Positions 22,101 through 57,160 are shown, numbered from the stretch's first letter. The stretch is DNA of 64,000 bases from Tubulanus polymorphus (GCF_964204645.1 NC_134032.1:8110275-8174274), one strand, 5' to 3'. Notes: a model not told the origin generated them from the letters alone. Numbers and translations: made by a program.

Positions 22101-25100
22101 TTCGAAGTTCGGATTTGACTAAGAGTTAACTTTAACTCACAACTGTGAAACGGGGTCCTGATTATGTTTCATATTGACATTGTATGACCTTCGCAAACAA
22201 TGACATCACACGCAAGACCTCTACACGCGGCGATACTGAACGCCAGGATATAGTCTCACAACCAAATTACCCCACATCGGTTCTGATAATCTTCTGGCAC
22301 TATATCGATAATCCGTGTCTGCTGGTTGCAAATTCAGGACCCAGTTCTACAGTTGCGAGTAATGTAGTTAACTCTGAGTTGAAATTACTTAATCTTAGAA
22401 CTTCAATCTTAGATCAGTCATCTTAACTCGGAACTGTGGAACTAGACCCTGATCTAAGAGGGTTCAATCATTACCAACACGTTTACTCCGCGCACAATTG
22501 TTTCTTCCAGGTGAAATTATTTCCCTATAATAATGTTCCTAATTGTATTTTCTTCTTTTTCCACAGAGCCGGAGCCTCCGGTGATCACCGAAGGCCCTAG
22601 CGACGTGATCAACAGTGTCAATTTATTTCTGCAATGTCAGGCGTCCGGGTACCCGAAACCGAAGTAAGCTTCCTGAAACGTGAAACCTAGCAATCAATTG
22701 ATGTCTCAAATGTATACGAATTTCCCATACAATTCAGCCGCAAAAAGATACGACACGATGCCCAGAAATCATGGACGGCATCACATTTTTAGTTCAGATT
22801 GTTAGGCCGATCGTTCAAAAGTTACTTTCAAGTTCAAATTCAAAGATTACCGTCTAAAGTCTACTCCAGATCTGACTAAATGATCGATCAGATTAAATCT
22901 AATGAAAAAAATTTCATAGCAGCAATTTGAAGAAGCGAGTTATTTGATATGGGTGGCTGGCTAGTCATCTTTTCTGTACGAAATATAGGGGCCACTTTTT
23001 GGGAGGATATAGGAAGTAATTTGATGATGGCATTAGGATTAGGCAGCCATTTTATTCGGGTAGGATTTATACGGGTTAAGGGGACCGTGCGCTAAGATGG
23101 CAGTAACCTTTTCTGATCGGGTCTGGGTTGAGTACAGGGGATTAGTGAACGCAGGCTCTGAGCAAGGGTCTATCGGGGTAGCCTAATTCGATGATGTCAT
23201 AGGAGAGTTGTTGGGCCAGCCATGCTCTAGAGAACAATCTTATTTCACCAGCATCACGTGGTATAAAGATGGAGAATCGTTAAAAAAGGTGGCTGCTGAA
23301 GATGAGGCGGGTGACATCACTGTTCGACCTTCGCAGCGGGAATTCGGGGCTGACGGCAAATTCAATGTCAAGACCGGGTCGTTACGCATTCGAATGGGTG
23401 ATACTTGGAACGGTAATTTTTACTGCGTGGCTGAAAACCAGTACGGAAACGTAACATCTAAAACGGTCAATTTTGAAAAACCGGGTAAGCATTCTCTAGT
23501 ATCGTGATACATAAGTGGTAAAACTAAAAGAAATTAGTCGAATTTCAATATTCCATAGTTTTGGGTTATGGGGAGCGTTATTCAAACCCTTTAAGTCCAG
23601 TTGTCGAAAATTAAATTCAAAAGTGATCTTAAATGAGTTTTGCAGTTGCTTAATTGGCTGTATGAAACTTAAATAGACGTAATCAGGCCTTGTGCACAAC
23701 TGGCCTTTGTTCAGTAATTGTGTGTTAAATGAAAGAAAGAAAATCAAATTTTAAAACTGATTACAAAATATTTCGGAAATTTTACGTAAATCGGCGACTG
23801 ATAGCGACCCGCGTGCACTTATTAACTCAAATATTTATGACGTCATAGTTTTAGAAGAGCGACGAAGTTACAAGACATACAGTGAGCAAGTTAATCAATA
23901 CACTAAACTGGAACTGGACTGCGACCCGGACAAAATCATAAGTATAGTTCCCGAACGGTACGCCAAGCGGAGCTGGGTGCTTTATTCGGGACCGGACTCG
24001 GACAACGGCGGATTACATGCGCACCCGATCGCAGACGATTACCGAAGATTCGTCACAGATGACGGTAAAACTAGTTTTTAAAGTTCTCCATAAAAAGAGT
24101 GTAAAATGAATTAAGATATTTTGACTGTAGAGTCAAATTCAGAGCGGTGGAACTGGGGACTGGTTATTGCAATCCATTTTTTCCACAAGGCCATGGGGGA
24201 ACCTAATTCCGTTGGTGACTCGAATGACTATAATCTCTAACTTCTCCAACAGAATTCATCTAAGTTTTATCTTACGTAGTGAAGTTACATAATGTTTTTT
24301 CAAGGTGTTCAATTCATACCTTAAGCATCGTCAAGTGGAATTTCCGAATGATAATGTCATATTAGTTTATTGACATCATATTTTACAAAACATAATCTCG
24401 CCACGCATGATAACTTCCTTATTCTTTAACTCTTATCAAACTATTTTCTTGCACAATCATTCTAAAATTGTGTAATTCTGAAGAAAAAAAAATCTTTTAA
24501 AAGGTCTTCACGATTTCAAATGAGAAATATATCTGTTGTTTACCATTAAACCGAGTAAAACTTCTCGACGATTCAAACGTTCTTTTTTCTACCTACAATG
24601 TGTGTAAAGCCCACCTATACGGCGCAGGGAAACACGGGGAAAGGCTGTGCAAACAGAACTTAGTCAAGTTAACTACCACTGTAAAATAAGAATTTAAAGA
24701 AGTTAACTAGATCTAATCAAAAGTTACGAACCTTTGCTACTAGTGAATGGGTAAGTGCGTATCCCACTCATTGACCCGATGAAGCGCTACGCAAGTAGCG
24801 AAAGCTCATCGTACTTTGGATAAAATCTAACCGACAAAGTATTAATTTTTGCCTTTGCGTTTACTGATTTGACGCGAGGATAATACGGCTCTCCCCGCGG
24901 CCCACCTCGTGATTGTAACCGTGATAACTTCGTTTTTCCTCGTCAATTACTTCAGGTAAACTGATTATCGCCAATGTAGATAAACAAGACGAGGCGTTGA
25001 ATCAACGATACTACGTTTGCGAGGTGACCAATCGACTTTTGGCAACTAGAAAATACGCGTCGAAATGGCACGTCAGCGTAAAATCCAGCGGTGAGTGATT

Positions 25101-28100
25101 TAAAGACGACGGGAGCGAAATCTAACGAAAATATTTCACCACCCGAAATTGAACTCGGTGAAAAAAAAACAAACAGATTAAAAGCGATTGGGCATTAGAG
25201 AAATCTATACACAATATGAAACAGGCCCGTAGCGTGAGGGATCACGACTAACCACCCAAAATCCTGATAAGTCCCTTTAAAAAAAGATTGAATTAGATAA
25301 GGCGTACCCCGGCTCTTTAGGCCTACACATGTAGATATGACTGGCGGCGAACTCCATAAAATGCAAGCATATTTTGCCGTAAGAAAGTGACTTAACCTTC
25401 GAGCGCTTTTTCAAAATGCCCGCCATTATAGGTTAATGATAATAATCTTTATCTACATTGAAATTATAACATAATATAACACTCAGTTTTATAGATACAT
25501 AATTAAATAGATATATAAATATGTTACAGAAGTTATAATATCGATGAAGGTGCCCGAGAAGCAAGATGCTTGTAAATAGGGTCACCTCAATCTTGGAGTA
25601 ATCATTTGACAAGTGCAAGCCTCAACACACTGCTACAATCACACAATCACAAAGTTTTTCGCAATAAATGTATCTTTAACAGGTAACAATCAAGCCCAGG
25701 GCTGGAAACTATTCTACCCGCCGAACTACGTCACTCCCATTGAGATACAGGCACTGGAAGGCGAGGATATACAGTTCAGATGCGCTTTCAGTGGCTTGTA
25801 AGTAAAGTGGTTTAGGTATAGGCCCACTTCATATGGCTGCCTTCGTAAATCCTCCTATGACTGTCATATCAGGCAGTTTATGGGGGCAGTCATTTTTTCT
25901 GCAAGTGTCTTTAGAGGTAATTTCGGCGACTTCGTCATTACGAGGTAAAACTTCGCAATGAAATTCGAGAAGAGTTAAATGTAAGTCCCAAAATCACGAA
26001 ACCGAAAATTTGTTGGAATTTATCCCCAAAAAAAAACTGAAGCTTCGGTTTTCCGCTGAAAACCATGATTGCGGGACTTACAATTCTACGTTACCGTTAC
26101 ATTGCAAGTGAACAAAAAAAATCCAAGGAATAGACTAAAATTCAAGAAATACGAGGTGATACGAATTCAAAAGTTGCTCACAACTGTGAATTTGTCTCTA
26201 GTGAAACGTCGAGTTCGAAACGTCGTGTCCTGTATTTCAAATTTAAATTTGAATCGTTTTTGAATCAACAAATATTGTTCTTAGATTTCTACATAGTACG
26301 TTTTATATCATATTATCTTTTTTTCGCCACGTTTGATTGTGGCTATTCTACTGTCGAAAATTCTCAACTTCCAGCGAGGAAGTATGGTGGCTGATAAGGG
26401 CCATAGCGTAAAATTCCTGGTATGTTAATGAAGGCGCCAGAACGCCAGAACGCCAAAACGAAAAAAAAACGTCCATTTTCACTGAAAGTTCGTTTTGTCG
26501 CGCCAAAACAAAGAATATTCCGTTTTGGCACCCTCGCCAAAACGAACTTTCATTTTGGCGCCCCCGCCAAAACAACGAAAAACGTCGAAATTTCTCTAAA
26601 AGTTCGTTTTGGCGCGCCAAAACGGAGAATATTCCGTTTTGGCGCCCCCGCCAAAACAACGAAAAACGTCGAAATTTCTCTAAAAGTTCGTTATGGCGCG
26701 CCAAAACGGAGAATATTCTTTGTTTTGGCGCGCCAAAACGAACTTTCAGAGAAAATTTGACGTTTTTTTCGTTTTGGCGTTCTGGCGTTCTGGCGCCCTT
26801 ATTTACATACCAGGAATTTTACGCTATGGCCCTTATCAGCCACCAAAAAGGAAGTGTTTGATCTGAGAAAAGTTCCTCGCGCGATATGTTGACTATAGTT
26901 TCTCTAAGCAACTTGTTTTCGCTTTTTTTCAGACCGATACCGCGGGTATTTTGGTACAAAGACAATGGATACGAGCCACTGGCGAAAAATCAACTGGCCT
27001 TCGCGATCAAGAATGTCCGGGTCGAAGATGAGGGCAGCTACCATTGTAAACTTGACCCTAGACACGGTTACACCGGGACTCAACCCACATTCAAACTTCA
27101 AGTTGACTGTAAGCCTAGATTTCCATACTTACCCTGGTATTGCCGCTTGGTCCACTCTTTGAGTAAGCTTACAGTCGTACTGGGTCAGTTACCGGAAGGT
27201 TGTATACAATTCAAACCGTTGTTTGATACTTTTTCTTCGGTAAACTGACTTATCACGAGCAGAGCCAGGATTTTTGGGAGGTGGAGGACGACTAAAGAGC
27301 ACAAAATTAATCGCGAAACCAAAAGGGGTGCGGGGGAATTTTGAAATTTTGGCGTTCTCCAAGGTCCGAAGACTATTTGATGGTTGCTATTCATATTTCT
27401 TCACATAATTAAACAAGAAATTTTTTTCTAAAAGATTTGAGTCCGCCTAAAATGTAGGGGGAAACCAGTCCCCCTGGGTCCGCCCTTGCTTATGAGACCT
27501 GACGAGGTAATCTACAGGTTTGGGCGTGGTTACCTGATGGATGACGGACGTCATAACTATAATTTCCGTTAGATGGCGAACTAATGCTTTGATTGGATGC
27601 TGCCTTACAGTCGTTTAAATGCACAGGTACTCATTGGGAGTGCTGGGGTGTTATATTCCCTATGGCCAAGGGGTCAGTTACTTAGTCCTTTTTATTTGAA
27701 GTAGAAAACACAATAAGTAAGAAGAGCTAAATGAGTATTTGACGTTTTGATCCAATTCTATGGGCCATTTTCAAAAACTGTTTTTGAAAATGGCGACCAG
27801 AATCGGGTCGAAACGTCAAATGTTTACCTTGCCCATTTAGTTACTTTAGTTTTTCATAATTATTGTGGGTTTCTTTATATTTCAAATAGGACAGTCACGC
27901 GTCTTGTTTAAGACCGTATATTGACAATTATACGTTTTTCTACGTGTAAATATTCCGAGAGTGTTTTTTGGTATAGCTTTTTTCTCGAGTAGATGTTCAT
28001 GCCAAAGCCTATGGTGTTCGTGCTTAGACTCGATCGAGTAAAACGAAGCGCTTATCAGAAACGTAAATCATACAAATGAGAGTTTTTTTCCGTCTCTTCA

Positions 28101-35614: not shown

Positions 35615-38600
35615 CTATAAAGAAGTAACCGGGAGGCCGTCCTCGCCAATCGTGGAAATCGGTTCGTACATGCCGCTTTCGTTCGCCGCCGCCGCCGACA
35701 AAGAAGACGACGACGGCTCCTGATCGTCGACTTTCTCGTAGACGTGCTCGCGTCGCACCCAGAAGTTCTTCGGAAGTTGATGATTGCTGATATGAAACAT
35801 CGGGTCGTTTTGTCCTTTCGGTATTTTCGTTTTGCGGATGATTTTCCCGTCGAGCGACGGTAGATTGATGACGACGGGCGGCGGCGTCTGCGCGGCGGCC
35901 GCCTGTTGCTGCTGCTGCGCCGCCGCGCCGGCTAACTCCGTCTGCACTTCACGCAGCGTCGCGTAGTCGCCGGCGTCGAATTGCGACGACTCGCCGCACG
36001 TCGCGGCCGTCGTCACCGGCATGGACAACGACGACGCGTCGGCCAGTTTATGATACGGTCCGTCGATTGAACTGGTCTCCGACGATTCCATGACGTCGAA
36101 TTCGCGGAATTCGGCGTCCGACGATAAAACGCCGTCGCTGTCGGCGCCCGCTTCGGCGCTCACGCGATTACTGAACCGATTGTTATTACACGCCGCAGCC
36201 GTAGACGACGTCGACGATGACATAGTTTTAGGACGCGCGCCGCCGGTGTTCGATTTCTTAAAAACGACCGGCACCGAACTGACCACCGGGAAGAACGTCG
36301 CCAGGTCGACGTCGCGACATTTTTCCGGATCGTCGCAGGGCGGCGGCGGCGACGGGCACGACGCGTACGACGTCAGTTTCTCGTAACTGTGACTAAGTCT
36401 CCGGTTCAAGTTGGATCGTTCGCCTGGCGCACGCCCCGATTGCTGATTGTCGTTTTTCGTCGCCGCCGATTTCTTCTTGTTCACATCGATTTGAGCATAA
36501 ATTGGAAGCTCGGTGGCTCCGCCTACTTCGTTTCCGTCGGCGTCGTCGTCCGCCGCTATTCGACGCAGTAAATGTTCCATGTCGCCGTGGATCGTGTGGC
36601 GTTTCGAGCGTTTGTCGTTCGTCAGGTGCGCGGCGAAATTCGTCGAACGCATCGTCACCGGCGTCGTCGCATTGTCCGCATCTAGAATCGACAAAACAAA
36701 TATTAGGATAACTACAACACTGTAATTGATGGTTTGGCCTGTAAAAAAAAAACATGCGTGACTGTCAACATCTGAAAAGCACTATCAGTAACAAGTTGAA
36801 TATTTTTCTACTCACTCACTCAGTTATTAATTATCATGTCACTCATCTTTTATTTGTAATTACTCTTCTCAGTTCTCTGTAATTAGTGTCAGCCCACCTG
36901 TAAATACTGTTGTTTTTCTATTGACTATACTCATTCACCTGATGGAGCTTCTATTGATTAGAAGCGTAAGCTCGTGCGTCAAATAAATAGTTAAACTATA
37001 CAGTACTACTCGTTACTCATTTCAAACCTGGTTAACACGGCTACTCTACGAATATTTTTCAGGAACATCTCATCGAAATAAGAAAGCAAGAGTCCCAATT
37101 AATCAGTAATCAACGGTTAGAACTTCAGTGACATCTTTCATATTTCTGTATATACATCAAAGAAATCGAATCAGTATTTCTCGAGACAAAAGGCGGCTCT
37201 AATGATCTGAGGCATTTTAAAACATAAAACACCGCAGATGTTCATGATCGTTCATTTTTCTTCCCACCAAGTAAATTTACTTTTATTTCGCATCTCATTG
37301 TCAAACAAGCCATCGTAGGATCGAATGTTTTATTCAGGATCAATTTTTCTATGATTTTCAATGATGAATTTCGTCAAAACCCCAAATCGCTTAACTCGAT
37401 TTTTTTCCGGTCGCAATGAATTCGAGTTGATCGGAGTCTACTCTAGTAAAATATTTACTTCTCAGATCTCGGATCTTTACGAAACTCCGCTCATCAATAT
37501 TGGTGTTTTAAAATAACCATTACAACAATTAAGAAGAAAAATTCTCAAACAAATCTTACCTGCGTAAGCGAGGTCTTGTAGTTGTACCATACCAGCGTGT
37601 AGCGCCCCGGCCCTTACTTCATCAATATCACTGTACAGGGCAGCACTAGCATCACGAGGTGTACCGCCACCTAGTGAGCAGAAAAGAACAAGAAACGAAA
37701 TTCTTAATATGGACTTTCCTAAATTCTACATGATGGTGTATGTTTAATCCAGTATCAAAATTAAATGTAAGTGAATAGAGTTCAAGCATTTAAAATTCAT
37801 GAAGATAGGCCATTATAGATCATTATAGGCCTACTCCTTATTTTAACGATTTAGAATATGCACGCTTGCCATTAGCGTTTACCACGGCCGCGCGCAGTTG
37901 AATCATTAACAGTTTCCAGGAAAACTTTAACTAGGCCACACGCAAGGCGTGCTTTTCATATACTGGAACGTAGCTAGCAGTAGTGAATAGATCAATACAC
38001 CACATAGCAGCTAGTCTATGTGAGCGTGTGTGCAGCATGAATATACTTAACGGCGCACGTGTCCTTTCGAAACGTAATGTGGTTTCAACGACAAATAAAT
38101 AACTTAATTGATAAATAAGCAACGCAATCCAATGAAATTCAATAGGGTCAGAGATTTTATTACTGCATTGAATGTTTTGAAAGTTCCGAAGAGAAACTTA
38201 GCCTCGTTCGCAAGTTATTTCGTACCAAAGGAAGAAAGTGTCCGTCATATGCGATAGCAAAAATAGACTTAGCTGTAGCAAAATTCCATAAAAAGAAGAA
38301 AATGAACGATCGACCATCAGCCAAACAAGTTCAATGTCAAATTTTTCGAGATCTGAGATTGGAAAGGTACGGAAGTGCCCTGGGGACATCATGAACGAGA
38401 ACTTTGATTTCATATCGAGGACTAAAAACCGCATCATAATTAAGTCAGAAACAAACAGAAAAGTCTTTTTTCAGCTTTACATCTCCGTTCATCGGGATCA
38501 AACCGCAATCCTTACCAGCCACTGAGGTAATTATCGGTGAGTTTGAGGTTTCTTATCGAGGAGAGAAGCCAGAACTTCTACTACAAGAAACTGGTTATAC

Positions 38601-41600
38601 CTATCTCGAAAAGCTGACTCGACATGTGGAACGAAAAATAGAATATGATTGGCTTACCCGTTGATCCATAGTTGATTTCCGCGTAGTAATCGCTTCCCGA
38701 GTTATTACTAGCGTTGTCCATGGGCCGATAGATGGCGCCCCCGATTTGTTCGCTGGTCGCTCTCTGAAAAGAAATGACACGAGCAAAAATAACAGTGGGG
38801 AGAAGGATGACTGAGGGAGTGAACTTTTCATTGAAATATCAAAGGGGCTCATTCAAAAAGATTAATAATCCATGAAGGGAGCATCTAGTCCGTCAAATGC
38901 CCGGTTTTTTCAGACAACATCAGCGTTTTCTCTTGGAGCCAGCGACTAGATCAGGGACCTATTGAGAATAACATCATAATTCGGATACCAAGCGTCTACC
39001 CACAGCCACAACATTAAGGCATAGCTCAAAATGTCATCGGATAATCTCGGGAGTGCCACGTTCAAAACGACATCCGATATTCTTCGAACAACTAACCGTT
39101 TTAGCACTAGCCGACGCACCGCCAGGTGGCGGTAGCGGTGGTGGTAACGGCGGAGGTCTCGTGTTGCTGTCGATCGGTTCGTACATGCCGTCGTCCTCGT
39201 ACATGGCCGGCAGTAGAGGGGGCGGAGCTACCGATGATGACTGACGCTCTCGAATGCTGGCTAGCGACTCGCGAGCGGTCACCTGACTGTAACGCGGGTC
39301 CAACTGGTCAGCTGAAATTTAGAGGAGAAAAAATATCAATCAGACGGTAAGAACATTAGAGAAGGGCACTAGGAAGCAAGGAGATGAATAGGTATTTTTT
39401 TCTAAAATTGATAAACGATTTCACATGAATTTTGCCTGAAAACTCAATACTTTTTAAAAGATGTTCATGAAAAATGATTGCTGGTTGCGGCAGCATTTTA
39501 TCAAGAGCATCTACTAGCGTATAGACGGTTCTGAACCCAGTTTGCCAGTCGTGAGTTGAATTCGACTATCGAGTCAAGGTTCTTACAAATCAGGGAATCC
39601 ATTGATATATTTGTATTTCCCTAATCCTTGACCAAAAATTCCCCCATTAGATCATAGGATTACCCGCATTTCGTCTGATGAGGTTGCTTGTGCCACTCTC
39701 ATCACAGCAAGAACAAGGCACCAAAAATTCCCCCACTTTTCCCTGATTGTTGAGAAAAGCGTAGGAATTTCTGAACTTTCCCAGCGAGGGAAAATAAACT
39801 AGGAATTCCCTGGTTTTGTCTGATTCCTCCTGATCAGGCCCTAATTGAAGAGAAAGTTGTTAAAACTGCGAATCTGATTCTGCCATGTCTGGGGTTAGGG
39901 TTCTGTAAATTTTATGCAAAGACCTCGTCTACGAAATTGAGCGCGATATCCCGAAAAAGCGCCACCTACCGTCCATGAAAACCGCTCCGTTAGTGAGAAC
40001 AGTCGGCGGGAAACCGACCGTGCCGACGTTACCCGTCGAATTCACCGGCCCGGCCTCGTCCGGGTTGTAGTTACGCTGCGGTATCGGCGGCGCGACGGCC
40101 GCGTCTAAACTCGCGTAGCTGCTGTCCTCGTTGAATTGTTCGTCGACGTCGCTGCCGCCGATGAGCGTCTGCTCGGTTCGCGTCAACGAGGACAGGCGGT
40201 GCTTCGGCTTTGTGTCGACGTCGCGTTCGTCGGCATCGACCGACGAGGAGTCGTCCGACACCTCTGAATACAGCGCCTCGGTGCTCGCGTCGTCGATGTT
40301 TGAGTACTGGCGCGAATAGCCGACCGGCGGTGGCAAAGCGGGCGGTGGAGGCGGCGGCGGGCTGAAATGTCGCTCGGAATTCGGCGAAAAGTCCGATTTT
40401 CGTTCGTCCGGCCAGTTTTTGTTGATGCACTGTTTCAAATTGATCAGGTCGTCGGCGTTCTCGTAGCGTAGTTCGCGTTGTTGCGAACAGGTGTCGCCGC
40501 CGCCCGCGCTGTCGCCGCCATTGCTCGATTTCTCCGATTTATCCTTGACGACCGCGTACAGATTCTCGTCGGTCGAGCCGGTGCGCTGCGACTCGTCGAC
40601 CATCATCATCTCATCAGCGATATCGACTTCAGTGTTCAATTTCTGCAAATTTGAAAAAGCGTATAAACGATAAGACGTCATGGGTTCGATTATTTAGGAT
40701 ATTCTTCTAAACAATCTATCAGTACATTGCAAAATGGATACAAAAACGATGGTTTACTCAGACGGCACAGTTTCACTGGTTGAAGTTCGACCAATTAGAG
40801 GTACGTGGTGAAACGAAATATTCAAAAATTTTTTATCCCAGACGAAAAAAATGCCTTAAGCCATCTTTTCCAGGAGTAAACAAACGCGAGTAACGGGGGG
40901 GGGGGGGATTCATGGAGGCAGCCACGTTTTTGGAAGGTCTATACACATAAGTTGACGATATCATCGCATGATTTATAGAAGCAGCCATTGTTTCTCTGGA
41001 AGTATCTATCAGTAATTTGATAGTCATTGGGGGGATATATGGCTGCAGTCAACTTTTGAGGTTCAGTCTACACGGGTAGGCCTATTTTGAAGACATCGTT
41101 TGGAGCTACGTGGAAGCAGTGTCATCTTTTCTCTTCTAGTGTCTATAGGGGATAATGTGATGAGAAGACTGAACTGACCTGATAGAGCAATTCCTGAGAC
41201 GACACGTTTTCACACTTTTTACACGAACCGTTCCGCTCTCGACTCAGAGTGCGCTTTTTACGCGGCGACTCCACGCCGACGGCCGCCCCATTGTTGCCAG
41301 CGGCGCCGTGGTTGAACGGACTATCGTTGCTGTGGTTACCGAGACGCTCATTGGGTATTATAGCGTATAGAGCGTCGGACTCGCACGTGGCGTTAGCAAC
41401 AGAAGACGGCGGGTCGGGCAGACGCCGGTCAAGATTACTGCCAGTCGACGTGTTCCTGAAATTTGGAAATAACTTTTCTTCTGAAAATTTATTATCAGAT
41501 TTTACTGCGTCCATATCATATATAGCCCTAGTTTGACTAGTAGACTGAAATTAATAGTATTTCAGTTAATTTTGGAATTACTTCAGACTTAAGGATGGAT

Positions 41601-44600
41601 CCAAAAAAATGTTAAATTTGCCTGAAATTTTAAGGGAAATGAAAAATATGAATCAGACCCTGGATCCACCCATGGTTGCAAAGTCATTGCTTAGATTTAA
41701 GACCAGTCAAAGACTAACTTAGTTCTATAGCCAATCTAACAACTTATGACCAGTCTTAAGATTTAAGACCAATTTTGGACTTAAGTCGCTAGTGCAACTG
41801 GCCCCTGGAGTTCTTGAGGGACATTTATATTTTATGATTATTGTACATCATTACTGTTATTTTATCTCTCTGATGATGAAAGCTTAGTTTCAAGAACCTG
41901 TCAAAATAATTTGTTATATCATCAACACTGCAGGTTTTGCTCAATAGCTCAGTTTTTGTAAAAAAAATAGGTTACACGAAAACGTTTTTCAAGATTCTAA
42001 GGATATCTTCATATCCTTTTTATTTCATTTAAGGAATCGATAAATTCATTTTTATCACAATTTCTCACATTCATTTCATTTGCAAAATATATCTAAACAT
42101 CATGAAAATCACAAACGTAATTTCTTCATACCGTGTTATTCTACTAAATAATGTTTTTGTTGAAAATACCCAGTTTATACCCAAACAATACAATTGGATA
42201 TCTAATATCATCGTTTCGAATAATCATTTTACGCAATTCTTTAAAAATATTTCAATGAAGCACAAAATGAATGCATCCCTTGAGCTAATCAATACCTTTT
42301 ATGTCCGCGGGCATTTCCGTTTACTTGACTGGCACGGTTCCCTGCTTCTAAAGCGATTACATTTTCGACGGTTAAAGGTCCCTGAAACAGATCGAACGGA
42401 AAAAGTTGTCCGACAAAATTGCAAGAAAGAGTTGAGGCAAAAACGTGTACCGGAAAACTTTGAATACAAAGGTTAGTTAATACTTTTTGTTAGGAAGTTA
42501 GTTTTTTAAATGAATACTAAAAGAAAAGCTGATTTGGTCAGAGAAAAACTAAACAAACTAAGAGATAGCAGCCTAAGATAATTTATTTCTCAAACTCTTA
42601 CTGAGTATTTGAAACCGATACCAGCTCGCAGTAGAATTTTACCAGTCTCAACTTTACCGAGTAAGAGACCAGGCTTGGTTCCATCGTCAGGGTTATAGAC
42701 TTAACACCAGTCTAAGACCATCTTAGTTCTGTAGCCAATCTAACTCAAGACCAGACTTAGGCTTTAAAACCACTTTTTGTCTCAACTACCGTATCCCTCA
42801 ACTATGAAACCTAACACTAACTTGGGATAGACTTTTTTACTGGTTTACTGGTTTCTCAAACACTTACTCAGCATTTGACACAAACTCAGGGTAGATTTTA
42901 ATTAGTCTAAACTTTACCAAGTAAGGGAAATTACTGTACAAGTATTTCACAGGCTCTTACTAGGAATTTGACCCCAACTAATAGGGGTAGAATTTTACCA
43001 ACTCAACTTGACCTAGTAAGAGACAGAGTACACCCTATTTCATAAGCTCTTACTCTGTATTCTACACCAACTAGGGGTAAAATTTTACCAGTGTCAACTT
43101 GACCGCAGTAAGAGACTTGAGTCTACTGAAGTTTTCAAAACTCAAATTTTCATTTTTTTCTCTCAAAATGTTGTTAGAAATTAGTGATTCTTACCACGTG
43201 AGACACATTTTTCTTGATCATACTCACAGAGGTGATGTTTTCATCATCGGGTAAACTGAAAATACATATTCACGTAAACGCACGGCGTCGACTACGAACT
43301 CCGAGCGCCGTAGTTCCTCATTACGCAACTCGGTGCTAGTAATTACAAGCTTCATTGTGATCGTGAAATTATCTTGCAAAGATTTCGTGATTTTTTAGTA
43401 ACCCAATCGTGAACCGATTGTGTGAAATATAACCCGCATTCAACTGCAGAAATGGGTCCAGAGTCAAATGAAACCTACTCGACTGTGGGACTAATTTCAA
43501 AGTCAAAATTAACCCTCACAATTCTGTAGAACTGTCCCAGGGAAAAATTAAATTCACAGTCAACAGTCCACAGTTGAACCCTCACAACCAGAGTCAAATG
43601 AAACCCACATAACTGTGGAACTTGGCCCAGAGAAAAATCAAACCCGCACAACTGTGGAACTGACTGTATGCATAGTCAAAATACACCCACTCAACCGTGG
43701 AATTGGACCCGCCACAGTCAAATGAAGCCCGCTGAACTGTGGATTCAGACTGAAATTGGACTCACGCAATATTGGATACGGAATCGAATTAAACTGACAA
43801 ACGTGGAAACCCGGTGTCCAGGTCAAATTGCAGGATAAGTCCGTGAGCATTTTAGATTTTCAAACTGTTTAGTACTCGAAATTACACGAATATTCTACGT
43901 TACGAAAAGACGATAAATTAAGAGTTAGATAAATGAACTTACTCGGGTTTCGGCATTTTCTTGCACGATATACACAGAGTTAGTAGTATTAGAATCACAA
44001 TGACACTGACCACACCGACAGTCGTTACGAACAACAACGACACCGGTAAACGGCCGTCATCGTTACGTTCTTCGACGGCAACCGACAAAAGTTTTCTACC
44101 TATGCCTCGTATCACAGGGATAGCGTCTGAAAGGATGAAGAACGAATTCATTTCTACTTCGAACACAAAGATTTTGATGGATAATTTTGCTGCATTCGTA
44201 AGTGTATGATGTATGCGCAACTCTGGAAAACAAATTTTCATTATTCGGTGAAAAGATTTGGAGATTTTGCTGTATTCCAAAAAAAAAAAACAGTCTTTTT
44301 AAACTTCTTAAAAATTTTCATAAACGATATGTAAAAAAATATCTACCGAATTCGTTAAAAACATCTGCGATTTTCCAAAAAAAAAGGTTGCCAAAACATA
44401 TCTTTTCACAGAATTCATAATTCAAAAAGAATCACGTCTTTTTTTACCTTCTTTCATTTCAAAGTTCACACAATATGGAAGTCCATCATCACATGTCATC
44501 ACAAATTGCTAAAAAAAATCAGAGAAAACCATCAGGTATCATTTCAGCTACAACCAGGGTCGGGTTCCACAAAGCGGGGTCAGGCTGGGTTTAGGGGCCG

Positions 44601-45839
44601 TGCATAAAGTACGTCGCATCTTCGTCAGAACGTCACAATCAAGGGGCCAGTTGCCCGAGAAAGTTTGATAATAACAGCAGGGGTCTACTGACGAACTATG
44701 AAATTCATATTTTTTCAACACAATGTGTCTTCAAAAATGTCCTCATTGAAAGGGGCTTAAAAGGGAAAATTGACTCCATATTTTGACAATAAGTTTAACC
44801 CTTTCAGGGCTGACTAATTAAAACCCTATAGTGCTAGAGATAATTTTGAAATTTTTGAAAATTCCACCCGTGTGTCCAATAACGGGAGTACCACTAAAGT
44901 GCCTCTACACCGCGGTGCAGTGTATCGTTAGTTACTAGTATTTCACTTATGACAGGTGCTGCCATTTTTCAAGAAATATTTACTAATTACATCAATACAC
45001 CGCAGTGCGGTGTACTAGCAATATCTATCACTGATTTATACACCGCACTGCGGTGTAGACACTGAAAGGGTTATCAATATGTTTCCATGCCTACATACCA
45101 AACTTCAGTTGGTAGGCATGGAAACATATTGATAAACTTATTGTCAAATTATGGAGTCAATTTTCTCTCATGAGCCCCTTTTCGGTGCAGACATTCTTTT
45201 TAGGCCTATATCCTTCAATAAATCAATGTTTAAGGACCACTGTCAGTGCTTTCTGGTCATAATAAGACTTTTATCAAGTATGTATCATCTTAACAGACCG
45301 AGCTAGGCCATCCAGTATGCTCTCAAGTCAGGTTGAAATAGACATTAGTAGAGATCATGACTTACCCAGGGAGAGGGGTTACGGTTCAACCGCTTGGTAA
45401 CATGCAGAGGTCTAAAATTCTGAGGCAAATCACTGACACCATCATTCCGAAACCGACATTTCAACACGACCGGACTCCGCTGCTGAAGCAAAACCAGATC
45501 GTTGACATCAGCAATCACGCGAAATATCCATAAATCGTTAGGCCTACGGCCAACCACAATTCTACTGCTGCTGGTGCCATTCAATAAAATCCATCGTCTA
45601 CAAGGCTTAGACCGTGGCGAGAACGTTTTCCCATACCCCGTGGTGAGGATATTTCTGCGGCGACGATTCTCAGCTAAAACCAGACTTTCCTTCTCGCCCG
45701 ATATAGAATACACCGTCAAAATCCGCCGGGATTTCGGGGAAAACCGATTCGAGCTCTGGTCAGGGACGACCAATTGACAGATTAGAAAAAGCTCGATTAC
45801 TACGAGCAGAATCGTTCCAGGCACCCCAAACGGGGCCAT
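35615..45839 (-). CDS. Single-pass palmitoylated tyrosine-rich transmembrane adaptor, PAG1/Cbp-like, ~1094 aa
   Basis: Exons 45366-45839, 44448-44508, 43943-44126, 43228-43255, 41179-41544, 39970-40642, 39097-39311, 38658-38763, 37560-37670, 35615-36681; phases consistent, 3285 nt. Hydrophobic N-terminus; TM LLFVTTVGVVSVIVILILLTL followed by CISCKK; RRLPDPP. About 20 Tyr motifs (YAII, YAVV, YSEV, YASL, YSQV, YEPI, YSDI, YAQI, YATL, YEKV). C-terminus YEPIS...VTSL*. Confidence 0.8.
42590..43130. repeat. Degenerate intronic tandem repeat
   Basis: Recurring GGGTAGAATTTTACCA..CTCAACTT..CC..AGTAAGAGAC..CTCTTACT units. Confidence 0.55.
44733..45200. mobile_element. Palindromic MITE containing a nested piggyBac-type MITE (44799-45070)
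   Basis: Outer arms AAAATTGACTCCATA..TTGACAATAAGTTT and AAACTTATTGTCAAA..TATGGAGTCAATTTT. Inner element CCCTTTCAG...CTGAAAGGG flanked by TTAA and TTAT. Confidence 0.75.
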
Positions 45840-45949
45840 TGTGTGGTAATAGACCAGACCAAAGCGGCCCTAATCGTTTCCGAATCTAAAACAGCATACG
45901 ACGCCGATTAGAAATCATTTTTCGCCGAAGAAAATGAATTTTTCATTCA

Positions 45950-51202: not shown

Positions 51203-52219
51203 TCATCTACGTCGCGGGCAACCTTTGAATGCGAGCGATCGGAACTTTTTACTAGATAAACAGTAAACAACAAAATTGACAGAGGAATCAATCTGAACAA
51301 ACATAGCCGCCACAAAGAAGAAATCAAGATTTGGGATGAAACCTCTGAAATTAAAAAATTTATTAAGCAATTTGTGCACAGCCATTGGCATTTCGAGTAA
51401 AGCAAACGTTGTTACAACTGAAATCGCTAATAAAACAGCTTGGTTATCATTAATTTTTTGAGTGCTTATTTCCGAGCGCCTTTTAGACGCTATATACAGT
51501 GAATATACTAGTATTATGTTTGCGAGAAATATACCAAAAAATGGTACAAATATGCCTGAGAAGTGCATGAGATTAATTGTCTTTTGAATTCGGAGAGAGG
51601 GGCGCATTTCAATCCGAAGGTTTTCTCTAAAAGGGCAAACAACGTGAATCTGTTCAACACCTCTGACAAAATACTGCCAGCCTTGAGTAACTACACTCAA
51701 AATAACTATCAATGATAAACAAATGTTACACGTCGATTTAGTACAGATGAGTTTGGACTTTAATGGAAAGAACACGACAATCAATCGTTCTAAACTGATC
51801 AACATAGTTAGTAGATTTCTAATCATTTTAGAAATTCCTTGCACCATGTTTGTGTGGCGGTGGTGAATTGAACCAATGAAATGATTGCGGCCAAAATAAT
51901 AAATGTTCTGGCCGTACGTAAGCATGCCGTCGAAATATCTTCCAGACTTTGAAACAGCTGTACCCAGTAGAAACATATTATCCGCTATCGTTAGCTGACG
52001 TAAAATGTAATACGTGGTTATTACACTTTTAAAACGAAATAGAACGAAATACGTGTAAGCATTAAGGAAAAATCCAGTAGTCCACACTACAGGAAAACAG
52101 TAAACAAACACGATTACTATGTTGACAATTTCCTTGTTGACTGGACAAATTTCCTCAAATGTAGCATTGGGCCATGTCGCATTTCCTTCGTCACTAACCG
52201 CTGGTGTTTTCAGGAACAT
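51203..52219 (-). CDS. Intronless class A GPCR, FMRFamide/peptide-receptor-like
   Basis: Seven hydrophobic segments; N-terminal NAT glycosylation sites; G..LN, LTIAD, SLERLIVVFFPLK, EMP, SVNFVVYCLSSKKFR. First ATG at 52219 (the ORF track extends to a TTG at 52369). Confidence 0.88.
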   Translation of the reverse strand: MFLKTPAVSDEGNATWPNATFEEICPVNKEIVNIVIVFVYCFPVVWTTGFFLNAYTYFVLFRFKSVITTYYILRQLTIADNMFLLGTAVSKSGRYFDGMLTYGQNIYYFGRNHFIGSIHHRHTNMVQGISKMIRNLLTMLISLERLIVVFFPLKSKLICTKSTCNICLSLIVILSVVTQGWQYFVRGVEQIHVVCPFRENLRIEMRPSLRIQKTINLMHFSGIFVPFFGIFLANIILVYSLYIASKRRSEISTQKINDNQAVLLAISVVTTFALLEMPMAVHKLLNKFFNFRGFIPNLDFFFVAAMFVQIDSSVNFVVYCLSSKKFRSLAFKGCPRRR

Positions 52220-52643
52220 ACCCAGGTTTCTAGAAAGACTCCGACCTCTGATTAACTTTCGACAGACGGTCTGGTAATTTCTGAATGGATACGCCTTTAT
52301 GATTTCAATAGAAAAGCCCTTTTGAAACTGAATCGACCAAAGACACGTGCCGTATAGCGGAAACGTCAATTCTGGCTAATTTTCATCCCATGATCTTCAA
52401 CATAAATGCATTTAGCGCATTTCTTCGTTTCCATTCATCTATTCAGACATAGATATATTCCCTTTGTTATCTTATAAAAGCCCATGATACATTTTGAGTG
52501 TAATGTCAGGCCACTATAAATAGTATATATAATTTGTGCCAGCGTGGTTTATTGCATCGGCAGAAGTGCCTGGGCAGTGATATTAACACATAAGGAATTG
52601 TGTTAATTCGACCGGTATTTCCAAAATAACAGGCCCGTGAGTA

Positions 52644-52759
52644 AATAGGAATAAGTTGGTTCAGGCCAAAGATCGAAGGGTCGAAAAAATAAATTCTCGC
52701 ACACTCGAATTTATTTTTTCAACCCTTCAACTTTCAACCTGAACCAACTTATTCCTATT
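52644..52759. repeat. ~115-bp hairpin / mini-MITE
   Basis: AATAGGAATAAGTTGGTTCAGG ... CCTGAACCAACTTATTCCTATT, with inner arms AAAAAATAAATTC and GAATTTATTTTTT. Confidence 0.75.
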
Positions 52760-52863
52760 GAGTCTAATAATATTCATATTTATGAATATCATATAAATTA
52801 TATTAAATGAAATCAATTTTAATAAAAAATTTGATATTAAAATGGAAGCAAATAAGAAGTACT

Positions 52864-53593
52864 TATGGTGGCTGATAAGGGCCATAGCGTAAAATTCCTG
52901 GTATGCAAATGAGGGCGCCAGAACGCCAGAACGCCAAAACGAAAAAAACGTCCAATTTTCTCTAAAAGTTCGTTTTGGCGCGCCAAAACAACGAATATTC
53001 CGTTTTGGCGCCCCCGCCAAAACGAACTTTCATTTTGGCGCCCCCGCCAAAACAACGAAAAACGTCCAATTTTCTCTAAAAGTTCGTTTTGGAGCGCCAA
53101 AACAAAGAAAATTCCGTTTTGGCGCCCCCGCCAAAACGAACTTTCATTTTGGCGCCCCCGCCAAAACGAACTTTCGTTTTGGCGCCCCCGCCAAAACAAC
53201 GAAAAACGTCGAAATTTCTCTAAAAGTTCGTTTTGGCGCGCCAAAACAACGAATATTCCGTTTTGGTGCCCCCGCCAAAACGAACTTTCATTTTGGCGCC
53301 CCCGCCAAAACGAACTTTCGTTTTGGCGCCCCCGCCAAAACAACGAAAAACGTCCAATTTTCTCTAAAAGTTCGTTTTGGCGCGCCAAAACAAAGAAAAT
53401 TCCGTTTTGGCGCCCCCGCCAAAACGAACTTTCATTTTGGCACCCCCGCCAAAACGAAATTTTCTTTGTTTTGGCGCGCCAAAACGAACTTTTAGAGAAA
53501 ATTGGAGGTTTTTTTCGTTTTGGCGTTCTGGCGTTCTGGCGCCCTCATTTACATACCAGGAATTTTACGCTATGGCCCTTATCAGCCACCATA
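52864..53593. mobile_element. Foldback MITE with ~125-bp TIRs and TTTTGGCGC..GCCAAAA arrays (copy 2)
   Basis: Same TIRs as 26383-26848. About 15 units at 30/54-bp spacing. AGTACT duplicated at 52858-63 and 53594-99. Confidence 0.92.
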
Positions 53594-54687
53594 AGTACTA
53601 CTGTCCAACGTGTAAAATTAATATAGATAAATCTCAAAACGCAAGGCATAATAAAACTAAATCTCACTTAGAGAATGATTTGAAATTAGAATATAAAGAT
53701 GATATATTAGAGACTTAATTAGAAGAATTAAAGAATGAAAAAGAAATATATAAATGTGATACGTGTAATCAATCATTCAGTAACCAATAAGGGTAAAAAA
53801 ACATTCTAGAGCGAAAGGTTTCAGCGAACTCTAACTCTTTTTCAATTTCAAGTGTGAGTAAAGTGTGATTGAAATAATTCATATTTAAAACATTGAATAT
53901 TTATATGCGTTAGATTCTTGTTTTTTTTTACATAAAAAGTGTAAGTAAAGTGTTAGTAAAAATAATTCATATTTTAAACATATTTTAATATTTGAATTTG
54001 TATGAGTTAGATTTTTAAACATAAAAAGTGTGAGTAAAGTGTGAGTGAAATAATTCATATTTTTAAAAACTAATTTATATATCTATGTACTAGACGTACG
54101 AGTAAGAATCCAAGAATTCTTACTTTCTTACTTTCTTGGCAAGAATCTTGGATTCTTACTCGTACCTCTCGTACGTAGATATATAAATAATTTTGTAAAA
54201 ATTACAAATATAAATTATTAATCTAAGTATAGAAATTTAAGTGGAAACATATAATTTATTCATTTTTATATATTTCAGGCAATATATTTTATATTTTCAG
54301 CTAATTTAACAGTCTATTGCTTAATTTGAATTATATAATTTATCATTTAATTCGTGAATGTATTTATGATTCCTTAATGATTTTTAATTTTTATACCTTT
54401 TATTACATATTTCACAGCATTTGATATTATTCAATCTTTCTGAAATATGATTTATGTTATCTTTTAATTCGGTGTATCTAATTTTGCAATTATCATAAAA
54501 TTCTAATAACTGTTTTAATGAGTAAACTGAGAATGAAACTAATCCTGAAACCATAATTATTAATTTCAGTTGCTCTTGATTTCTGTAAATAAGATGTAAT
54601 AAATTTAATATATTTTCACTCCTTTTTATAGTTAAAATATATAAAGTAGATTAAATTAAAAGATGCTGTTTTAATCCTCTAATTCTT

Positions 54688-55701: not shown

Positions 55702-56697
55702 CTAACTCGAACAATAGCAAAAATGAATGATTTTACGAAGCTCATTTCTTATTTCGACCCCGGTCAAAATATAAAGAAAAAAATTTATACCGTAATTAGT
55801 GACATAAAGCAAAGTTAAAAGATCATTTAGTATTATGACGAGTGGAATTTTCGACTTGTAGGATTCGGTGGTCTGAAAAATCCAATGGGGGGAGCATAAC
55901 AACAAAAATGAAAAGGTCACAACTAACGTCATCAACAGGACAACTCTGTTCATTTTAGAAGATTTTCTTTCGGCTTGTTCACTTCGACGCCCTGTGAATT
56001 TTCTGCTTCGAAGAATAACCAGTATCAGTACGTTGGCAATCAGGATAATGGTTGCCGGCACGTAAAACACCGTAAACGCGTAGGCAACCTTTAACGTAGC
56101 GTTAAGATCATCGTAATGCATGTATACGCATTGGCTTTGCGGAGCGTAGAATCGAACACTGAAATAATGTATGAACCCTGAAGGCATGCACCATAACGTA
56201 ACGAGAAGCGCGATGATACGTGCAGTTTTAACTTTGTTCAGACGTCTGGTCATGAAAGGAAAGGACACGCAGGCTAGACGTTCTACGGAAACCACTGCAA
56301 TAAACCACGAAGACATATTCTGGAAAATGTGCAACAAGTTATTGACAGCGATGCACGCCGGTGTGTTGTGGAACGTCACCAATACATCTCGGCCGAAACA
56401 CTTACGTAGGAAATTCAACCAAAACAAAAGTCTAGCTATTAGGACGAACGCGTCGGTGATGGCGATCACGGAAAAATATACGCAATAGGTTCGGCTCCGT
56501 AGTTTAATCTGCATGATAAAAAGTGTCATCGAGTTACCGAAAAGTCCAACGAAAATGATAGCTGGTAGAACGATCAGTGTCAACCAGTACTGTGTTTTTC
56601 TCATATACTTTATATCCGGAATGAATTTGTTCTCAATTTCTGCAGACCAGTAAACGAATTCATATGGCTTTGTGATATTTTCAATTGAATTAGACAT
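55702..56697 (-). CDS. Intronless class A GPCR, peptide-receptor-like (FMRFamide/GPR139-type)
   Basis: VGLFGN, IAITD, C..SSWFIAVVSVERLACVSFP, FYVP, CSP, NYGINFFLYILTG. First ATG at 56697 (MSNSIENIT). Confidence 0.9.
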   Translation of the reverse strand: MSNSIENITKPYEFVYWSAEIENKFIPDIKYMRKTQYWLTLIVLPAIIFVGLFGNSMTLFIMQIKLRSRTYCVYFSVIAITDAFVLIARLLFWLNFLRKCFGRDVLVTFHNTPACIAVNNLLHIFQNMSSWFIAVVSVERLACVSFPFMTRRLNKVKTARIIALLVTLWCMPSGFIHYFSVRFYAPQSQCVYMHYDDLNATLKVAYAFTVFYVPATIILIANVLILVILRSRKFTGRRSEQAERKSSKMNRVVLLMTLVVTFSFLLLCSPHWIFQTTESYKSKIPLVIILNDLLTLLYVTNYGINFFLYILTGVEIRNELRKIIHFCYCSS

Positions 56698-57160
56698 TTC
56701 AAGAGCTATTGTATCGCTTCGAGAACTCGAACTATTGTTCACTCGACACAATTGAAAGTTGTAAACGTATGGATGATAACTTAATCATATATAAATAGAA
56801 AGTCTATTTCAATTGTGTTATACGCCCTGGGGTATTGTTAAGAAATGAATGCCAATTTCTATTAGTTTGAGAAGCGATACTTCGAAAGAAATAATTTAAT
56901 TCATTTGTCCAACAACAACACGCGTTTATTTTAGTGTCATTCATTTTGCAAGCCTGAAAAACATTGCAATACGCTTACGTTGGCTTTTCTAGAATACAGT
57001 TGACTCTCTCAAATCCGCTGACATCATCACTTCGCCTTCTAGTCGCAGTGTGGCGTTTTCTGCAGTAGCAATAAGCCACACAATATAAGCACATTTAAGG
57101 TTTCCAGGTGCCATGCCTTGGCTACCAGCTGGACCCACATAGAAGAATTTTCTCGCTATT

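Follow-up and report, generated by a model that had tools for sequence, protein, structure and literature searches.

The minus-strand gene LOC141909481 of the ribbon worm Tubulanus polymorphus, contained in a genomic stretch of 64,000 nucleotides (nt) (GCF_964204645.1 NC_134032.1:8110275-8174274; hereafter the window, with positions counted from its first letter), raises the question of whether a worm encodes a counterpart of the lipid-raft adaptor PAG1/Cbp, as a first-pass annotation of this locus had proposed. The product of the gene, the RefSeq protein XP_074655966.1, comprises 1104 amino acids (aa) encoded in 11 exons and carries the title "uncharacterized protein", just as that annotation had anticipated. 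PAG/Cbp consists of a few outer residues, one transmembrane (TM) helix, two palmitoyl cysteines and nine or ten tyrosines, with the motifs YSSV for Csk and YEEI/V for the Src SH2 domain, two proline-rich regions and a C-terminal VTRL for the PDZ domain of EBP50 (PMC3492796; PMC4861716). XP_074655966.1 is a PAG1 look-alike, but membership of the PAG family is not supported, as two of the defining features of the latter, the profile match and the architecture, are lacking. The best explanation, held at about even chances, is that the protein represents a lineage-restricted, receptor-like phosphotyrosine scaffold which would work in the manner of the PAG/LIME/SCIMP-type adaptors.

LOC141909481 fills positions 35615..45839, the same limits as in the first-pass annotation, from an ATG at 45839 to a stop codon at 35615-35617 (Table 1). 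All of its exon borders are of the GT-AG type, the phases of all ten introns agree and polypyrimidine tracts are present. The exons were queried singly, with exons 4 and 5 located by tblastn, and the public protein XP_074655966.1 was used for whole-protein scans. The motifs quoted in the first-pass annotation, namely a TM helix followed by CISCKK, RRLPDPP, ALYSEV, LYAVV, RYSQV(TARESL), ALYSDI and the C-terminal MYEPISTIGEDGLPVTSL, could all be traced to minus-strand exons within this span. That annotation had also made its case dependent on the exons being joined in transcripts. Four read runs were compared with positions 39960-45900 (5,941 letters); none of the runs is labelled as RNA, but X4 proved to hold spliced contigs. 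Contig 26 of X4 (1457 nt) joins 45366 / 44508-44448 / 44126-43943 / 43255-43194 / 42380-42295 / 41454-41179 / 40642, and all skipped parts begin with CT and end with AC on the plus strand, corresponding to GT..AG in the direction of the gene. A second X4 contig (4855 nt) ends precisely at position 39970, which is the exon 7 donor. Splicing of exons 1-7 to one another is thus seen in transcripts, in which the ectodomain exon shares a message with the TM exon and the tail; the joining of exons 8-11 is based on RefSeq and the intron phases. Exons 4 (43195..43255) and 5 (42296..42381) together amount to 147 nt and are in frame, so that a transcript without both would stay in frame and lose 49 residues of the juxtamembrane region; the one contig that spans them contains both, and no skipped form was observed. 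Across the compared region, run X1 and one low-depth X3 contig differ from the window at nine coding positions, and X1 looks like DNA from another haplotype or individual.

XP_074655966.1 is a single-pass membrane protein, with a signal-peptide-like start, an ectodomain of ~180 aa, one TM helix and a disordered tail of 872 aa. By hydropathy, hydrophobic segments are confined to aa 1-29 and 203-238, the second of which is followed by basic residues, and AlphaFold2 (AF2) without an alignment predicted helices at 5-24 and 207-234 and nothing else with confidence. The TM helix ends in ...LLTL-C-I-S-C-K-K, and the positive charge which follows it points to an N-out, C-in topology. The exon carrying the TM helix and CxxC ends in phase 2, directly behind KKMPKP. 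The juxtamembrane cysteines are probably palmitoylated, as far as the sequence can tell. The signal-peptide-like start and the extracellular part of ~180 aa, encoded in exons 1-3, were absent from the first-pass annotation. Residues 26-206 have a net charge of +14, four cysteines, one NGT sequon and several di- and tetra-basic sites, and were recognised by neither Pfam nor the ESM-Atlas, where the best score for exon 1 was 0.75. The tail has a net charge of -37 and 55% disorder-promoting residues, and self-alignment of the protein revealed no internal repeats. The AF2 models of the ectodomain and TM helix (pLDDT 41) and of the tail (mean pLDDT 35, almost no secondary structure) were too poor for a fold search. 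The ectodomain part of exon 1 (45366-45764) is unusually basic, with RRRR, KSRR, CRR and KR stretches that resemble proprotein-convertase cleavage sites, and the ectodomain might be shed or processed. A prohormone reading of the basic ectodomain, with its RRRR and KSRR sites, was considered and dropped, given that the ectodomain is joined to a TM helix and tail.

The motif anatomy of the tail is real and non-random. Its 25 tyrosines were evaluated against a null of 5000 within-exon shuffles of the tail. Yxx[VILM] occurs 16 times (shuffle mean 3.9), Y[AST]x[VILM] ten times (mean 1.1) and YEx[VIL] four times (mean 0.2), counts which none of the 5000 shuffles reached, while the Csk optimum Y[AST][KRQN][VILM] is found three times (YSQV at Y613, YAQI at Y811 and YSNI at Y494; mean 0.2), a number reached by three of the 5000. 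An L, I, V or M residue precedes the tyrosine in 11 of the 25 cases and an A, S or T follows it in 13; an aliphatic residue at position -1 fits the substrate preference of Src-family kinases. The first-pass annotation had described about 20 tyrosine motifs in acidic context. The number and enrichment of the motifs bear this out, and an acidic residue falls within positions -4 to -1 of 16 tyrosines, compared to 10.6 in the shuffles, 106 of which (of 5000) reached the observed value. The tail further contains the SH3 ligands RRLPDPP, RPPPLPP and PPIPQR, a Grb2-type (YENA) and a p85-type (YRPM) site, and the C-terminus -P-V-T-S-L, a class I PDZ ligand of the x-T-x-L class. At least 36 SH2-domain matches, representing candidate readers of such phosphotyrosine motifs, occur in the same genome. 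An immunoreceptor tyrosine-based inhibitory or switch motif (ITIM/ITSM) reading of the tail tyrosines was rejected, with 0 sites having the required residue (I/V/L/S) at position -2.

The PAG profile of Pfam (PF15347) has a curated cut-off of 27 bits. PAG is the top Pfam family on the TM/juxtamembrane piece, with 16.6-17.2 bits (E 0.003-0.004) over profile positions 16-68, and the best cut-out, aa 205-262, reaches 17.2 bits (E 0.003); the TM exon alone scores 10.4 bits. LAT (PF15234) is also listed on the TM-CxxC piece, with 12.1 bits. Among twenty overlapping tail cut-outs (23-125 aa) only the two covering the TM/juxtamembrane region matched PF15347, the remainder giving nothing even at E<=10, and the whole protein likewise gave no match at E<=10. 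Pfam searches with the exon open reading frames (ORFs), trimmed exons, whole protein, ectodomain and tail returned nothing beyond weak TM-type matches. Six-frame scans of the genome with PF15347 and with the EBP50_C profile (PF09007) yielded no match, but the controls were silent too, which makes these scans uninformative. In architecture, the CxxC sequence motif directly follows the TM helix, as in PAG, whereas PAG has a minimal outer part without a signal peptide and in XP_074655966.1 a hydrophobic stretch (aa 1-25) and ~180 residues precede the helix. The same holds for the transmembrane adaptors (TRAPs) at large, a functional class rather than one homologous family: the single TM helix, juxtamembrane cysteines and tyrosine-bearing tail are present in the worm protein, the short ectodomain is not.

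The likeness to PAG1/Cbp comprises a TM helix with CxxC and basic residues directly behind it, a tail whose first motif is an RxLPxxP SH3 ligand, many tyrosine sites of the YSxV/YAxV (Csk SH2-type) and YExI/V (Src SH2-type) forms, and a last tyrosine in YExIS ~16 residues ahead of a PDZ-type end, [V/I]-T-x-L. In contrast to PAG, with its few outer residues and 10 tyrosines, the worm protein has a signal peptide, the ectodomain and 25 tail tyrosines, its tail is over twice as long and without a hidden Markov model match, and the protein is without detectable sequence relatives. Human PAG1 has 432 aa, compared to 1104 aa in the worm protein. Blocks of the two proteins were compared by eye, using the overlapping human PAG1 12-mers of PMC6277618 Table 2; they were picked post hoc and without a shuffle test. 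The worm CISC-KK..DDENITSV stands beside human CSSC-DREKK..DHENLMNV (common D-x-E-N-[IL]-x-x-V), RRLPDPPSS beside RELPRIPPES (RxLPxxPP-x-S), NLYAVVKDKSEK beside DLYATVKDFEK (LYA-x-VKD..EK), and IYAQIDVNKK beside EYASVDRNKK (YA-x-[VI]-D-x-NKK), while the ends read MYEPIS..VTSL and DYESIS..ITRL, with the tyrosine 17 and 16 residues from the C-terminus, respectively. By the same visual comparison the blocks are mostly collinear, with one out of order, and the resemblance of several exceeds the bare binding consensus; the PAG profile does not pick them up.

In the ESM-Atlas, where scores under 0.9 serve as leads only, the top feature neighbours for aa 200-1104 are unnamed serine-rich arthropod clusters (0.92), and the named neighbours shown are LIME1/PAG (0.89), human cytomegalovirus (HCMV) UL135 (0.88), poxvirus A36R (0.84), PAG (0.84), SCIMP (0.81) and LIME1 (0.80), all of them membrane adaptors whose tails carry Src/Csk/SH3 docking sites and most of them TRAPs. 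This pattern agrees with the functional reading of the first-pass annotation. LIME1 (PF15332), SCIMP (PF15050) and LAT (PF15234) share with the worm protein a single TM helix, palmitoylatable juxtamembrane cysteines and a disordered tail with tyrosine motifs, but they are far shorter, have no ectodomain, are vertebrate-only in the Atlas rows and give no significant sequence match. Vaccinia A36R (PF05950) and HCMV UL135 (PF25733), with Atlas scores of 0.84-0.88, are similarly membrane-anchored disordered tails with SH2/SH3 docking motifs, but are viral, much shorter and unrelated in sequence; these viral adaptors indicate that such tails arise by convergence. Receptor-like Src scaffolds such as CDCP1/Trask, a type I protein, combine an ectodomain that is folded with cysteines next to the membrane and tail tyrosines that dock the Src SH2 domain. 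CDCP1 differs from the worm protein in its short tail and an ectodomain of CUB-like domains. The PAG1/Cbp-like designation given by the first-pass annotation is thus apt for the motif anatomy, the sub-threshold Pfam match at the TM/juxtamembrane piece and the Atlas neighbours, but does not extend to membership of the family, in view of the missing profile matches on the whole protein and the rest of the tail and of the ectodomain.

The search for relatives was exhaustive for aa 751-1104 and by word search for aa 1-750. Exhaustive phmmer of the former against 1.84 billion representatives retrieved solely XP_074655966.1 itself, and word searches, run with aa 1-750 and with exons 7 and 11, gave at most this protein. 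A paralogue search of the 268-Mb genome with exons 1, 7 and 11 identified only the gene's own locus, and LOC141909481 is single-copy. Searching the sequences of the PDB produced only a chance poly-proline match to ezrin (E 0.76). No orthologues linking the worm protein to the vertebrate PAG family emerged from these searches. The absence of relatives within the nemerteans means little, since few proteomes of this phylum are public; among molluscs, annelids and arthropods, of which many are annotated, there is no sequence-detectable orthologue. As no relative or paralogue was found, the antiquity of the circuit is not inferable, and the old Src-Csk-raft circuit which the first-pass annotation had implied is left unsupported.

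If XP_074655966.1 functions as a phosphotyrosine scaffold, its juxtamembrane cysteines would be palmitoylated and the SH3 domain of a Src-family kinase would dock at RRLPDPP or RPPPLPP. The docked kinase would then phosphorylate the many [L/I/V/M]-Y-x-x-[V/I/L] sites, whereupon Src-type SH2 domains could be held by pYE(P/K)[I/V] and Csk-type SH2 domains by pY[A/S]x[V/I], including the YSQV, YAQI and YSNI sites of the Csk optimum. The C-terminal -V-T-S-L would bind a class I PDZ scaffold. Phosphorylation, each of the binding partners and the link to rafts are predictions made from the amino acid sequence. Because it has a real ectodomain, unlike PAG1, the worm protein may link the scaffold to a ligand or contact on the outside.

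Several points weigh against a scaffold of this type. Short linear motifs are easily over-read, and YxxPhi is also the AP-2 sorting signal. The number of class I SH3 ligands ([RK]xxPxxP) is not above chance, with two observed against a shuffle mean of 0.56 and 519 of the 5000 shuffles reaching it. The Pfam PAG score lies below the cut-off and only 1.5-3 bits over those of unrelated TM families, so that the TM helix accounts for most of it. No named Atlas neighbour reaches 0.9, and the top neighbours, at 0.92, are unnamed arthropod clusters. The searches yielded no orthologue in which the motifs could be seen to be conserved, and the five non-synonymous and four synonymous differences among the nine coding differences suggest only moderate constraint, on very few sites. 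Transmembrane adaptors have few extracellular residues and one TM helix, and the ~180-aa ectodomain sets XP_074655966.1 apart from this class (PMC4861716).

A true but very diverged homologue of vertebrate PAG1/Cbp, in which the ectodomain was kept or gained and the tail expanded, is an unlikely alternative, even though no Pfam family scores higher than PAG on the TM/juxtamembrane piece, where its match runs 25 residues beyond CxxC, and several largely collinear blocks resemble the human 12-mers beyond the binding consensus. One of these blocks is out of order, all were chosen post hoc and by eye, and two of them lie in the last exon, with which the exhaustive search found only the query protein. 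The failure of PF15347 to match the whole protein or the other cut-outs, the empty genome scan (with its silent controls), a signal peptide and 180-aa ectodomain where PAG has few outer residues, and the lack of any intermediate invertebrate member in the searches run further argue against common descent.

The ectodomain and signal peptide joined to the tail would also suit a lineage-specific receptor or adhesion molecule, in which the YxxPhi sites serve mainly in AP-2 endocytic sorting or bind other SH2 proteins (SHP-type phosphatases, PI3K, Grb2), with no special link to Csk or Src. The generic nature of YxxPhi as a sorting signal, the YENA and YRPM sites and the top Atlas neighbours, which are unnamed arthropod proteins and not adaptors, are in line with such a molecule, which is nevertheless rated as rather doubtful. 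Sixteen YxxPhi sites go far beyond sorting needs, the residues favoured at +1 and -1 of the tyrosines are typical of Src substrates and of ligands for the Csk and Src SH2 domains and not of AP-2 signals, none of the sites has the -2 residue (I/V/L/S) of an ITIM, and almost every named Atlas neighbour is an adaptor linked to Src or Csk. A gene-prediction artefact, in which unrelated ORFs were merged into one model or the locus has no function, is highly improbable. It would agree with the lack of a relative in any database searched and with the low confidence of both structure models, but is contradicted by the spliced contig joining seven exons at canonical borders, the consistent phases in all ten introns, the strong motif enrichment and the GC content of the exons (0.47-0.62, with one 61-nt exon at 0.33), which lies above that of 2-kb windows across the span (about 0.37-0.47). 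A receptor-like phosphotyrosine scaffold restricted to this lineage is preferred over these alternatives.

Csk has been reported in all animal phyla, and Csk and the Src-family kinases are conserved across animals (PMC3492796), but no invertebrate counterpart of the Csk membrane anchors PAG1, LIME, SCIMP and SIT, which have been described in vertebrates, was found in the literature searched. A protostome membrane protein with a full PAG-like docking set is a concrete candidate for the missing Csk anchor. Should the similarity be convergent, it would constitute a clean case of the easy re-invention of such scaffolds, as the viral neighbours A36R and UL135 suggest. Should the protein instead belong to the PAG1/Cbp lineage, as its first member from an invertebrate and in a receptor-like, ancestor-type form with an ectodomain, which is improbable, a palmitoylated Csk/Src-family membrane anchor would predate the vertebrates and provide a candidate answer to how Csk gains access to the membrane in protostomes. 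The value of the finding is limited in that it concerns a single-species orphan of a non-model animal, with functional steps drawn from short motifs and no support for an ancient circuit.

Table 1. Coding exons of LOC141909481 in the window, with the protein features they encode and the evidence for each.
Feature	Position	Strand	Evidence or remark
Whole coding span, LOC141909481 (XP_074655966.1)	35615..45839	-	11 coding exons, 1104 aa; exon lengths sum to 3315 nt (1104 codons and stop)
Exon 1, aa 1-158: signal-peptide-like hydrophobic start (aa 1-25, 45765-45839) and most of the ectodomain	45366..45839	-	ATG at 45839, donor GTAAGT, hydropathy, AF2 helix 5-24; joined to exon 2 in X4 contig 26
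Exon 2, aa 159-179: ectodomain Cys-x6-Cys hairpin piece	44448..44508	-	Joint 44126->44448 seen in X4
Exon 3, aa 179-240: end of ectodomain, TM helix (aa 207-232, 43966-44043), CISC-KK cysteines (43963-43974)	43943..44126	-	AF2 helix 207-234, hydropathy 3.05, sub-threshold Pfam PAG match at aa 210-259
Exon 4, aa 240-260: cytoplasmic juxtamembrane DDENITSV block	43195..43255	-	RefSeq protein, tblastn; joined in X4 contig 26
Exon 5, aa 261-289	42296..42381	-	RefSeq protein, tblastn, X4 contig join
Exon 6, aa 289-381: class I SH3 ligand RRLPDPP (41407-41427), ALYAII (Y319)	41179..41455	-	Joined on both sides in X4
Exon 7, aa 382-606: NLYAVVKD (40541-40564), YENA, poly-Pro (40325-40363), YSNI (40295-40306), ALYSEV (40259-40276), SYASL, class II SH3 ligand PPIPQR (40073-40090)	39970..40642	-	Contig ends or joins in X4 coincide exactly with 40642 and 39970
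Exon 8, aa 606-677: PRYSQVTARESL (YSQV at 39280-39291, optimal Csk-SH2-type motif), MYEPID (39172-39186), RPPPLPPPLPPP (39124-39159)	39097..39311	-	Splicing from RefSeq model and intron phases only
Exon 9, aa 678-713: IYRPM, DYYAEINY (38674-38685)	38658..38763	-	Reading of sequence and RefSeq protein
Exon 10, aa 713-750: ALYSDI (37624-37641)	37560..37670	-	Reading of sequence and RefSeq protein
Exon 11, aa 750-1104 and stop: PIYAQIDVNKKK (36473-36499), YEKL, YASC, YHKL, YATL, YEKV (35729-35740), C-terminal MYEPISTIGEDGLPVTSL (35618-35671) with class I PDZ ligand TSL	35615..36681	-	100% identity to XP_074655966.1 residues 751-1104 (exhaustive phmmer)

Several repeats and neighbouring ORFs occur within the gene and in the remainder of the window. 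Intron 1 of LOC141909481 contains an element resembling a miniature inverted-repeat transposable element (MITE) at 44749-45181; its terminal inverted repeats are 49 nt long and 90% complementary, and palindromes lie inside it. Logan contig depth over this element reaches about 1e5 in run X1, compared to about 30-40 in its flanks, which indicates that it is present in very high copy in the genome. Intronic stretches at 41552-41949, 42547-42745 and 43542-43740 also show very high depth in all four runs and presumably represent further dispersed repeats; they, and not the gene, give rise to many of the odd joints among the reads. Two copies of a repeat that is open on both strands, with reiterated ARQNELLEKFRRFSLFWRGRQNE units, are located at 26348-26760 and 52727-53718 and probably represent a mobile element bearing tandem repeats. 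Exon-like ORFs with weak immunoglobulin-domain matches (Ig_3, V-set and Ig_2; E about 1e-4) are found at 23208-27248 (+), between an ADAMTS-like gene and LOC141909481. A long ORF of a long terminal repeat (LTR) retrotransposon, with a DUF1759 (gag-like) domain, a Ty3-type aspartic peptidase and a reverse transcriptase, lies at 59844-63227 (+). The intronless ORFs at 51203-52369 (-) and 55702-56751 (-), coding for 388 and 349 aa, match rhodopsin-family seven-transmembrane receptors (7tm_1, E 2e-9 and 4e-12, respectively), and the latter shows an additional weak match to the Srg chemoreceptors.

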